Source of the DNA: Saccostrea cucullata
Taxonomy: Eukaryota
NCBI RefSeq assembly: GCF_032062105.1
Contig: NW_026930622.1
Location: forward strand, 310,001 to 374,000
Direction of reading: 5' to 3'
DNA: 64,000 nucleotides
Shown here: positions 18 to 34,973 of the stretch, one piece after another
Position numbering within the stretch: the first letter of the stretch is position 1
Layout: every line of letters begins with the position of its first letter
Position numbers and translations under genes: made by a program
The notes under the pieces: generated by a model
The model's input: only the letters and a program-made list of their open reading frames with translations
Database searches by the model: none
What the model was told of the DNA's origin: nothing

Positions 18-906
18 ACTGGAAACTTGTGGGTGACATACACAGGATATTTCCATACAAGTTAATATAATTTGAGGATAGTGAATGCTGGAACCAGAGA
101 TCGTTACATGTGCAGTCCCAGTTGATCTCCGACATATTAATGGAACTGAGAGATGTCAAACCACTAAACAAGTCGAAGGAAACCTTGGTAAATTTGTTCC
201 TTGAAAGGTTGATTGTCTGTAGAGCGGTATTAGAGGAAAACATACCACTGGTGAGATTAACCAGATTAGCATTATCCACTGTGATGGATACCACGGTGGT
301 GATGGGAGAGAAGAAATTGGCGGCCAATTCTCCGCTGGTCAGCTGGGCATTTTGGATGGTAAAACCTCCGATTGGGTTGGGGACGTTGGCCAGCTTTTGG
401 ATCGTCAGTCCAGCAAGACTTGATGCATCAGTTGAGGCGATGATCCCTCTATCGATCTGGAGATAATCCAACTGCATCCCATTGAATACATTTGCTGGAA
501 TTCCGTTGTTTAGGTTGCAGCCGGTTAGCCTTAATTCCTGAATGTATGTCATGTCGGTAAATGAGGTTGTAGCAAGCCCCAGTGTTCCTCCTGTTGCGCA
601 AGAAATCTCCAGAGAAGCCTTGAAGTTTGTGTCAAACGTTGAAACATCATAGGCACCAAAACCCGAGAAAACGCTGGCACTTACCAAGTTACCATTGAAG
701 AAGGTAATTTTCAATCTTTGTGGATTTGGATTTGAAAAGGATCCTAGTGCCACTGGGAACGTTGCATTTGTAAAGTCACAAGTGTACACACCAACTGGTT
801 TTGTATATTCTTCGTAGGTACATCCAGAAGGGTGTGTAGCTCCGTAACACAGAGACTGAAATGCCAAAAAACAAATTATTCTTAAAATCATTTTCCTATC
901 TGTCAT
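18..906 (-). CDS. LRR type I membrane protein paralog 1, first coding exon only (remaining exons lie left of the window)
   Basis: ATG at 906 and a hydrophobic signal peptide. Family motifs PSGC..YTC, PNPQRLKI, FSGF and LEISC. Canonical LRRs (LQTINLSRNKFTKV, LSSINMSEI) and LRRCT (WDCTCNDLWF..ILC). Phase-1 donor GTAAGT at 17-12 on the - strand, at the same position as in the paralogs. Confidence 0.9.
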
Positions 907-1834
907 TTTTTAAGCAAAGGGAGTCTTTCTGTTAAAGATGGGTTTCGAAGTCGACTTAATTTTTTTTCACTGAGAATTCGATGACCGGAATAAATAAGGA
1001 CCTCCCCTTTCAGTGTGTATTTTAAAAGACCGAATTTAACATTCTTTCATAAATGTTTCTGATCATTATTTGCTTTTGAACTTAATATATAAAGTCATAA
1101 AATAGTTGTTGACACAACAGATATTTGGCATGACAGAGGACTTAAACTACTTAGAATGACTTCCATGTGACAAACTGCAAACTGAAAAAATTATTAAATT
1201 TATGTACATGTTAATTACAGAATATTTAAAGACAGCAAAATGAATTTAATAGTAGAAAACCATTGAACTTTTATCAAGATAATTCAAAGCAAGTTAATCA
1301 TTTTAATAATTTTGTTGGACAATCCTCGCGATGAAATTAATCAAGATGATTTAAAACAAGTTAGCATCTCTTACTACATTTTGTATATTGGCGATGAAGT
1401 TAAATGTGTAATATCATTTGCTTAAAACACAGTGCATGCTTCAAATACATGTCAACTTTCAAAAATAAAAGTAAAAACAAAATAAATAAAAACAAAAATT
1501 AAGGAAAATGACAGTTAAAAGAACTTATCATTTAAAAGTAAACAAAGTAAGTATTTCGTTTGTTCACAAGGATACAATAATCACCAAATTAAACATAACC
1601 CACATTGACACATCAAACCTAACTTATCGTGTATTTGATCATTTTCTTAAAATACCTAGATCTAATTCTTTATAAAAACATATAGCACACAGGTATTATC
1701 ACATTGAGGAACGGTGAATATTTAAACACCTGAATATAAGTATCGAAAGGTGAAGGTTCTAAGACAAGTAACTACCAAAAGATGTGAGCAGAAAGTTAAG
1801 CAATAGGAAAACTACTTCAAGAAAATTGACCATC

Positions 1835-31675: not shown

Positions 31676-33484
31676 GATTAATAAGGGTTTTAACGGGCTC
31701 TAACAGGAAACATCATCCACATTTTAAAGATCTTGCCTTTGTTATAGTTATCCGTTGTTAAAAAATGTTTACAAGCTCTAAACGTTGACATTGTTATTTT
31801 TTTTTATTATATAGCATCACGTAGGCGTGTCATTATGTGAGAAAGTAAGTTGCGTTAATTGGAATGTATTTAGTTTTTGCACATATATATGGTATGATGT
31901 TGTGATCTTGCTAATTTCAAGAGAAACTTTTACATGTATGATACTGTATAAATTATTAATTTATTTTGTTACATTACTTTTTTTATCGTTATTAAACAAG
32001 GTCACTTATAGGACCGTGCATTGTGCTCAATAAAATCATTGATAATAATGTTTTATTGTTGATCTCTTAAATATACTAGTATATAAATCTCCGGGGTTTT
32101 TTTCTTGTCGGGGGATTAGAGTGGGTGTTTCTATACCTTTTCCATACTAGTTTGTTCAAAGACATTGGGGACGCTCTGAAATCTTTTTTTATCATTAAAT
32201 ATCAATCAAAAAGCAATTTTTAAGTACATTTTGATATTTTTTATCTTCACTATGAAAGCCAAGATAGAATTATTTGACAGTGTTATCTTCCTGAAACTTG
32301 TCTTACAGTTAAACTTATCAAATTGTCTCACTAAAGCTTTTTTTAGTTCCTAGAAATCTTCTTCAATATCTATTGTTTTATTCATTTTGAAACTATTTCA
32401 GATCTGCAAAAATAAAATTTTCCAATGTGTTCAAAAACCAATTAATACGCAGACGCAAAACCAAAAAATGAAGAAAAGAAAGTATGGCCCAACCAAAACC
32501 TTACCGGGTCAATTGAAATACTTATGTTTGCAATATAAGATTATCCGTATTTCATAATGAGGCATTAGTTTCCAATTATAGCTTAAATTGTTAAGTGTGG
32601 ATCGTATTGAGGCTTATGAGTTAAAATGTGTGCCAGGCCACTGGGTCGCTGTTTGCTTTGTTTCCTTGCTTTCATGGAGATTTAGACTGCAAAGAACGTG
32701 GAAGACCTCACATCTTAAATGTCCTCTCTGGCCGCAAACCAGTAATCCACTTAAAATTCAAAGGGATTTAGAACCTGTTCCATTGTCAGAAAAACTGAGT
32801 CCAAACAATAACAATTTCTTTTTTCTCAAGAATTTTTAAACTGTCTTTGTTTTTAAAAAGCTTGTTGTGCTGAAGTGGACACATCGTCAATCTTTGTATA
32901 TATTCAAACATTTTAAAATTTCTAACTTCTAAAATTTCATTTATAAAATAAAAGTGTTAAAACTTCGTTGTAAAGTGTTATATCGTCTTAGTTTGTTACT
33001 TCTTTTAGATTGTAATCAAGACAGATAGACTAAACATCTATCAATTGTGCTTCATTCAATTTTCAGAGGAAGCCGTGTTTGTACTTTGTACTTTGGTTCA
33101 ATTTGAAAATTTTCAATTTAAAATAATAAAATAATCAGGCTGCAATAGATATTAATTATACAACTGTACTGTGCCAACAATTTCTGTAATCGTTGGAATA
33201 AACAGGTTAAACGTCTTTCTTATTTTTCAATCTTCTTAGTCTTTATCCATGAAAATCGTGTTCCATATTTAAGAATTTAAATCAATAAGAATTATAAACT
33301 TTTGAATGTGATCTACCTCTGCAGTGTTTAATGATTTTACGGATCATTGGATACAAGAACATTTCAAGTTAATATTGAAAGACCTTTCTGGGCAAATCCA
33401 CGGCCATTTTCTTTCCACTGGATTTCGGAGATAAAAATATCTCCAATGTAATTTCTGAAAGACAGAGGGAAAAATCTGGACAAT

Positions 33485-34973
33485 ATGTCTCTAATTTCAG
33501 TCCTCGTGGTTTTAGCTGTGTGTTCGAGGGTGTATGGTAATCCACAGGGATGTAGTTATGATTCCACACAGCTCCTACACACATGTAACGCCAGAGCTTG
33601 GTCCCTCCCGTTGGCCTTCGGAACATTCTCGCCTCAGCCCCAGAGGATTTTGTTGAGGGAGGTTGATGGTGAACTTCCAAACGGTACCCCGACCGGACCT
33701 ACGTTTTCGGGATTCTCTGCCATCAATACTGCGAGTTTTGATTCCAATTATGCCCCAGAACTCATCATTAGATGTACTTCTAACGGTCAACTCATCATCA
33801 CCCAAGCTGCCTTCTCGGACATGGGATGGGTAGAGGAGCTGACCATTGAAGATTGTGATATTTTATCACTTCCTGTTCAGGTCTTCTCACATTTCGGGAA
33901 TTTGAACCGGTTTGCTATTATTGGAGGATCAATCGACGCCATGATTGGAGACAGCTTTACCGGAATGAATGTTGAAAAGATGTCCACGGTACCGGACCCC
34001 CGGGGAGAATTTGTCATCAAAAACAGTCGCCTAGTGTCAGGAGGATTCGCTTTTGGTGCCCTTTTTTCACAAGCAAATGTAACGAGTGTTATCATCGAAA
34101 ATGCCAATCTTAAATCCATTCAAACAGATATGTTTTACGCTCTCCAGAAGATGACATATCTTTCTTTGAGCAACAATCCCTTCACATATCTCCCAACCGA
34201 CTTGTTCAAAGGTATCAACTCTCTAACGACCGTTGAACTATATGGCATCTCCTGGGCGTGTACATGCACCAACATCTGGCCCCCAGCCTGGCTAGAAAGT
34301 AACAACATAACCATGAACGGGGACGCCGTGTGCGGATCTCCTACGGCATACGAAAGTAAGATTTCTGATCAATGCCTTTTTTAATTTGGGTTACCTCCAT
34401 CAATCAAAAACATGGCATAAGATGTGCTACGTTCTTTATTTTATTCTGTATTTTTTATTACAGATGTGAAAATGTCCTTATATGATAAGGAACAGTGTCC
34501 ACAACCAGATGCATGCCAGAAAGCTGGTCAAACAGGTATGGTTTCCCAGAACATATCAAGCATATGAATAAACAATCTTTCAAATCAAGGAAAATGTTTG
34601 GTAATCAATTTCTACGCACTTTTCATTTATTAACTTAAATTAAGGTAATTAATTTAATTGTTTTGAAGAGACTCAAAAATTGTGATATTTCACTAATGTT
34701 TCGACACGAGTTTACCACTTTTGAATCTATTTTCCAGGATTTGTTGTGGGTAGCATATGTATGACGATCTTGGACGTCGTGAATTACGCTCTGCTGTTCG
34801 CCACATTCGTCCTGTCCCTTGTGGCGTTGGGTTTGGTCATCCATACCAAACGACAAGTAGGTAGTGCCAAGGACTCTAAACAGAAAGGCAAACCTAACGC
34901 CAAAGGTTCAGGGCTCAGACGCTCCAGTGCCAGCTGGAATAAGGTCGACGATGCTCAGAATGTGCCCACCTAG
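33485..34973 (+). CDS. LRR type I membrane protein paralog 7 (exons 33485-34355, 34464-34535, 34738-34973; 392 aa)
   Basis: Signal peptide, PQGC..HTC, PQPQRILL, LRRs (MTYLSLSNNPFTYL), WACTCTNIW..VC. 72-nt mini-exon NVKMSLYDKEQCPQPDACQKAGQTG, TM helix, basic tail. Spliced length 1179 nt. Confidence 0.92.

Follow-up and report, generated by a model that had tools for sequence, protein, structure and literature searches.

Why should an oyster keep seven neighbouring genes for short surface proteins built of leucine-rich repeats (LRRs) and lacking a TIR domain, and what might such proteins recognise? The question is raised by a 64,000-nucleotide stretch of the Saccostrea cucullata genome (positions 310,001 to 374,000 of contig NW_026930622.1, assembly GCF_032062105.1; hereafter the window), in which a first-pass annotation had seen a tandem array of seven LRR surface proteins, the six complete ones with intact frames, and had read them as a panel of recognition proteins. 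We find that the proteins resemble conserved molecules of self-recognition, or accessory proteins of the membrane, more closely than a rapidly changing immune panel. Our favoured explanation, to which we assign a probability of roughly 0.45, is that they are adhesion or self-recognition proteins which engage fixed partners belonging to the animal itself and which are coupled to the cell interior directly through their cytosolic tails. Fixed self-partners are favoured because the paralogs appear stable and non-redundant, with conserved binding faces and conserved tails.

The array itself holds up. The seven paralogs lie within positions 18-34973, are 26-45% identical to one another and appear in a six-frame reading as seven long first exons (~290-300 codons each) between 18 and 34355. 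Spliced models confirm the intact frames and the lack of a TIR domain: genes 2-7 encode 405, 405, 395, 391, 402 and 392 amino acids (aa), every intron being GT-AG and in phase 1 and internal stops being absent, and gene 1, on the minus strand, is also complete once its last two exons just upstream of the window are added. Equal-length RefSeq-type S. cucullata models exist in the database for genes 3, 5 and 6. All seven proteins have an N-terminal hydrophobic core, one transmembrane (TM) segment, ten shared cysteines and a basic tail of 40-54 aa. Their exons, in window coordinates unless stated otherwise, are as follows.

18..906, minus strand: gene 1 exon 1, with signal peptide, LRRNT, eight LRRs and most of the LRRCT (spliced model; Crassostrea virginica (P0221) and Pinctada orthologs)
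Contig 309876-309811 and 309546-309269, minus strand: gene 1 exons 2-3, upstream of the window (410 aa in total)
1835..2762, plus strand: gene 2 exon 1, mini-exon module included, intron 1 absent (spliced model; spliced RNA contig L023 of the ortholog)
2852..3141, plus strand: gene 2 last exon, with juxtamembrane cysteines, TM and tail (405 aa)
9357..10251, plus strand: gene 3 exon 1 (RefSeq model P0001, 405 aa)
10342..10407, plus strand: gene 3 mini-exon, with the fourth LRRCT cysteine and the first cysteine of the extra pair (spliced model, cysteine alignment)
10497..10753, plus strand: gene 3 last exon, TM and tail (spliced model)
17400..18273, plus strand: gene 4 exon 1 (spliced model)
18406..18471, plus strand: gene 4 mini-exon (spliced model)
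18648..18895, plus strand: gene 4 last exon, with TM and a Gly/Pro/Lys-rich tail without the W-x-x-V-Q helix (395 aa)
22173..23037, plus strand: gene 5 exon 1 (RefSeq model P0002; AlphaFold model)
23122..23187, plus strand: gene 5 mini-exon (spliced model)
23454..23698, plus strand: gene 5 last exon, TM and tail (391 aa; spliced RNA contigs L018-L020 of the ortholog)
30066..30945, plus strand: gene 6 exon 1, sister of gene 5 and 45% identical to it (spliced model; RefSeq model P0317)
31064..31129, plus strand: gene 6 mini-exon (spliced model)
31413..31675, plus strand: gene 6 last exon, TM and tail (402 aa)
33485..34355, plus strand: gene 7 exon 1, the most conserved paralog, in a clade with mussel and scallop members (spliced model, tree)
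34464..34535, plus strand: gene 7 mini-exon, 72 nt (spliced model)
34738..34973, plus strand: gene 7 last exon, TM and tail (392 aa)

The set is small and closed. A profile search of the whole assembly (1.17 Gb) returned only these seven genes as full-length matches (E below 1e-96), the next matches being generic LRR stretches at 1e-16, and no tail-bearing gene besides the seven was found in the assembly. When the window and 40 kb upstream were scanned in six frames with a family hidden Markov model (HMM) and a TIR HMM, the latter validated as positive on control loci, neither an extra or broken copy nor a TIR domain was detected, which agrees with the earlier remark that no pseudogenised copy is visible. 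In C. virginica, 7/7 genes have one-to-one orthologs in the same order and orientation; in Pinctada, genes 1-4 stand in the same order with local inversions; and oyster, pearl oyster, mussel and scallop all have the family in clusters. In a quick tree, genes 1, 2, 3 and 4 are each joined to a Pinctada ortholog of their own at support 96-99; mussel and scallop members fall in the clade of gene 7, and genes 5 and 6 are sisters within the oysters. Mussels carry duplicates of their own, and within oysters the seven are fixed. Birth-and-death turnover, pseudogenes and lineage-specific copies were thus not found for the oyster set in the tree, the genome profile search or the scan of the window and its upstream flank. 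Since the lineages compared in the tree diverged in the Palaeozoic, several of the paralogs have existed as separate genes for hundreds of millions of years.

Named homologs are all from pteriomorph bivalves (Saccostrea, Crassostrea/Magallana, Ostrea, Pinctada, Mytilus, Mizuhopecten, Pecten, Ylistrum and Tegillarca), with scores falling at the family edge from 1e-92 to 1e-19. In a representative protein search the full-profile matches all measured 286-447 aa, the rest being dominated by giant LRR proteins. As the word-indexed protein searches each missed some known members, these results only suggest that the family is absent outside Pteriomorphia. Two irregularities were seen among the relatives: in its assembly the gene 4 ortholog of Pinctada runs across three frames (L026 16060-17161), either an error or real decay, and the Tegillarca annotation omits a mini-exon that is present in the DNA (L027 16489-16641), either an annotation slip or alternative splicing.

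Gene structure and arrangement vary in two places. Gene 2 has two exons only; intron 1 is absent in Saccostrea and C. virginica, where the linker is shorter, and the Pinctada ortholog retains a separate mini-exon (window 2730-2745; L029 8174-9199; L026 11365-11598), a distribution that points to intron loss in the oyster lineage. Genes 1 and 2 stand head to head with start codons ~930 bp apart (906-1835), an arrangement kept in C. virginica (~850 bp) and replaced by a tandem one in Pinctada, and this spacing suggests that the two may share a promoter.

How have these genes been selected? Between oyster genera the proportion of non-synonymous differences (pN) is 0.11-0.15 and that of synonymous differences (pS) is near saturation at ~0.7, giving a rough dN/dS ratio of 0.04-0.08, which points to strong purifying selection on the family and, with the one-to-one orthologs in C. 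virginica and Pinctada, bears out the first-pass view of an old, selectively maintained set. That annotation had proposed mapping dN/dS onto the concave face, and no excess change appears there: identity is 81.0% (226/279) at concave positions, assigned from the LRR register and not from atomic coordinates, vs 81.6% (1274/1562) elsewhere in the ectodomain (p=0.80). Variants within 90% clusters differ by ~1%, again without a concave excess, although the clustering itself sets a ceiling on observable variation. The strong purifying selection, low polymorphism and undiversified concave face together argue against an immune or gamete arms race. The same genome holds at least 150 TIR matches vs seven genes of the LRR family, so the family has, judging by gene counts, not behaved like the Toll-like receptors (TLRs) beside it. 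Of the proposed recognition panel, the maintained set remains, and the idea that it diversifies is weakened by the fixed one-to-one orthogroups, the purifying selection and the lack of concave excess.

The ectodomain had been described as non-canonical, which overstates the case. Two AlphaFold models (n=2; one scallop member and gene 5; mean predicted local distance difference test score ~85) agree that residues ~20-305 form a single LRR solenoid of LRRNT, eight LRRs and LRRCT. Over ~250 residues it aligns with VLR, LRRTM2, Nogo receptor 2 (NgR2), Slitrk1, Toll and LRIG1, none of which stands out: Z is 20-22 (~21 for VLR, LRRTM2 and NgR2) and identity 12-24%; the top match is hagfish VLR-A (Z 21.9, root-mean-square deviation (rmsd) 4.1, 255 residues aligned), and the adhesion or self-ligand proteins LRRTM2, NgR2, Slitrk1, SALM and Slit2 are tied with VLR and Toll. 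The eight repeats are spaced at 34, 26, 24, 32, 25, 24 and 24 residues, and repeats 1-5 are degenerate (24-34 residues), with Cys or Gly instead of the Asn ladder. A supposed family-specific block dissolves on the models into the strands and loops of degenerate repeats 1-2, inside the solenoid. Of the extra cysteine module only the last two cysteines are truly additional and are predicted to flank a disulfide hairpin on the membrane; the first mini-exon cysteine aligns with the fourth cysteine of the TLR3 LRRCT and is a normal LRRCT cysteine. The family-specific cysteines thus amount to one extra pair, and a further predicted disulfide joins repeats 2 and 3. Because the solenoid aligns with known LRR proteins, and the family motifs and the mini-exon cysteine fall within ordinary repeats and LRRCT, the ectodomain is diverged in sequence and, as modelled, canonical in fold. 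The LRRCT is closest to that of TLR3 (profile search of PDB, E 2e-4), and in the ESM Atlas the N-terminal part matches generic LRR clusters only. A Pfam scan of full-length members returned only LRR families above cut-off, with no Ig, FN3, TIR or kinase domain. The signal peptide was called from the hydrophobic core and the structure model.

On the cytosolic side, the tail is the best-conserved region between oyster genera (80-92% identity in one comparison and 88-98% in another, vs 76-84% for the ectodomain), and its identity to Pinctada is 58%; signalling or anchoring is therefore probably through the tail. In both AlphaFold models the TM helix runs on unbroken into the cytosol (58 residues). 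From the membrane onward, the tails share a basic helix containing WxxVQxxL, a QKPP motif and, at the very end, a Trp, and among 55 distinct full-length members these motifs occur in 28/55, 28/55 (QKPP-like) and 27/55, respectively. The first 25 tail residues include 8-11 K/R, and the tails of genes 4-7 carry kinase-like basic-basic-x-S/T sites. A single member gave a Pfam match to WBP-1 that fell short of the cut-off (E 0.002); we set it aside as the generic signal of a TM with basic residues.

Do the transcripts end where the gene models do? Spliced RNA-derived contigs were recovered for the gene 5 ortholog (three runs), the gene 2 ortholog and one further relative, and they span LRRCT, mini-exon, TM and tail and reach a stop codon, beyond which lie 88-217 nt of 3' sequence. 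The family is therefore transcribed in related species and ends at the tail. A downstream TIR exon is absent from the spliced contigs of these three relatives, in which the stop and 3' untranslated region follow the tail, and no kinase exon was found there either. The earlier suggestion that a separate signalling partner is needed is weakened by the tail being the most conserved region.

These, then, are type I membrane proteins that belong to the LRR-only extracellular class and make up an old family, known so far only from pteriomorph bivalves. Under the favoured explanation, each paralog would bind a fixed partner among the animal's own proteins, whether a surface protein of a neighbouring cell, the matrix or a membrane protein in cis, and ligand engagement would be coupled inward via the conserved amphipathic helix, which is basic, and the motif at the C terminus. 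These would serve as a docking site for calmodulin, a scaffold, the cortex or some other partner in the cytosol. The paralogs would be specialised and non-redundant, and a single tissue or life stage would probably use them together. While anatomy and evolutionary pattern are read directly from genes, models and orthologs, it is from these that we infer the ligand, the tissue and the cytosolic partner. Several observations weigh on the other side. The tail has no match in Pfam above cut-off, in PDB or in the ESM Atlas, so that its partner is a guess from motif shape, and the gene 4 tail is without the helix motif; the shared LRR fold is uninformative on function, VLR and Toll scoring equal to adhesion proteins; and conserved pattern receptors do exist.

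Those receptors supply the strongest rival, which we consider unlikely though ahead of the others: TIR-less pattern-recognition receptors whose ectodomain binds conserved microbial molecules and for which a TLR or TIR-only partner signals, as for RP105, Hydra HyLRR and scallop LRR-only proteins. The TLR3-like LRRCT fits, the many TIR genes in the genome are possible partners, and scallop LRR-only proteins bind lipopolysaccharide and peptidoglycan (PMC5877582). Yet there is no birth-and-death expansion, there are no pseudogenes, orthology to pearl oyster is one-to-one, the concave face is undiversified with low polymorphism, and a conserved tail would be unexpected in a silent co-receptor. Nor do the known systems match closely. 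TLRs share the Cys-capped LRR ectodomain, whereas the oyster family has no TIR, less than half the repeats, a three-exon gene and no expansion; RP105/CD180, which binds an MD-type cofactor and pairs with a TLR, has a TLR4-size ectodomain (~600 aa vs ~290 aa and eight repeats in the oyster) and ranks 33rd among structural matches (Z 16.4). Scallop CfLRRop-1 to -6 are likewise bivalve LRR proteins without a signalling domain; they are described as having LRR motifs and nothing else, a description that sets them apart, and none appears by name among the homologs (PMC5877582).

Somewhat more doubtful is a role as auxiliary subunits of an ion channel or transporter, like the BK gamma subunits (LRRC26/52/55/38), which shift channel gating, and acting via the TM helix and basic juxtamembrane stretch. 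The two groups have a common plan of LRRNT, LRRs, LRRCT, TM and basic short tail (PMC4197896), with similar size and topology and a Pro-rich tail as in gamma1; the basic cluster after the TM, matched by the K/R count given above, is one that the positive-inside rule would itself predict. In a structural comparison with LRRC26 of the Slo1 complex, the alignment runs on into the TM (Z 17.9, but rmsd 8.1), and an anoctamin gene lies downstream of the cluster in this contig (plus strand, 58974-63242 and beyond; Anoct_dimer matches at contig 373090 and 379226). However, the BK gamma/Elron cluster (LRRC26, 38, 52, 55, LRTM1/2) has six canonical 24-residue LRRs (PMC4197896) and eight cysteines, vs eight irregular repeats and ten shared cysteines here, and a profile of LRRCT, TM and tail finds no LRRC26 in PDB at E<=1, though it is present there. 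Comparison of orthologs often shows lowest conservation in the TM (52-76%), unexpected for a working surface, and anoctamin synteny was not seen within 10-kb flanks in other species. On the same doubtful footing we place a bolder proposal, in which a single surface system peculiar to pteriomorphs uses the seven paralogs as fixed subunits or as a combinatorial code, with the helix and QKPP/Trp tail as an undescribed signalling or anchoring module that replaces TIR in a bivalve LRR receptor class.

A function as gamete-surface recognition or fusion proteins is less probable still. Broadcast spawners need such proteins, and spliced full-length sequences are scarce in public read assemblies (of 101 cluster members, 99 lack a spliced tail, one is a RefSeq model and one an RNA contig), which fits narrow expression, but there is no control gene to set this scarcity against, and assembly may account for it. 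In spawners the proteins of species recognition usually evolve rapidly, in contrast to the strong purifying selection seen here and the ~1% polymorphism. A chemosensory role, or one in sensing settlement cues, in larvae or at the mantle edge is improbable: one spliced member was recovered from a Joint Genome Institute environmental assembly (L022) of a sample series that probably consists of plankton metatranscriptomes, but the family is small and stable, and single-pass LRR proteins are not known to act as small-molecule chemoreceptors.

Where, then, does the family belong? With signal peptide, LRRNT, LRR solenoid, four-Cys LRRCT, one TM, a short tail and no other domain, the oyster proteins are members of the extracellular LRR_Only type I membrane class, which includes LRRTM, TPBG/5T4, the GPIb chains and orphan LRR-TM subfamilies of fly and worm, and in which tandem related genes and lineage-limited orphan subfamilies are common (Dolan et al. 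2007, PMC2235866). They belong to none of the TLRs, RP105, BK gamma subunits or VLRs, differing from the last in being germline-complete with TM and tail and in having no cassette pool or partial copies nearby. Within the class, the family is orthologous to no named member (12-24% identity in structural alignments) and has five degenerate N-terminal repeats, the extra juxtamembrane hairpin and tail motifs of its own. Database labels of its members (TLR13, as 'toll-like receptor 13', TLR3/CD283, Slit1-like, SLITRK2, LRRC26-like, FLRT1-like and LINGO) are automatic and mutually contradictory, and members so labelled are without the defining domains of the TLR or Slit names. Literature searches by identifier of locus, protein or sequencing run found no paper naming them. 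The first-pass annotation had recognised no named family, and we concur: this is an undescribed, unnamed lineage family within a known architectural class.

Where the first-pass annotation had seen heavy transposon traffic between the genes, high-copy dispersed repeats and tandem arrays do occur. Two tandem arrays are seen, one homogeneous (11896-13832; 44 bp x 44 copies, 98% matches) and one looser (4733-6494; ~432 bp x 4.1 copies, 77% matches), and dispersed high-copy elements at 7540-7935 (~400 bp, 92%) and 19913-20460 (~550 bp, 87% identity) match many other contigs. Upstream of gene 1, contig 278334-281772 (L016) holds exons that by eye resemble acyl-CoA thioesterase.

The architecture is a common one, and our surprise is accordingly moderate until a function is found. 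Labels such as TLR13, TLR3, Slit, SLITRK, FLRT, LINGO and LRRC26 on these proteins could nonetheless contaminate immune-gene catalogues. What the locus reveals is an unnamed family of surface proteins kept as a cluster across the main farmed bivalves, namely oysters, mussels, scallops, pearl oysters and ark shells, and its fixed orthogroups and conserved tail provide a handle on a possibly lineage-specific adhesion or regulatory system.

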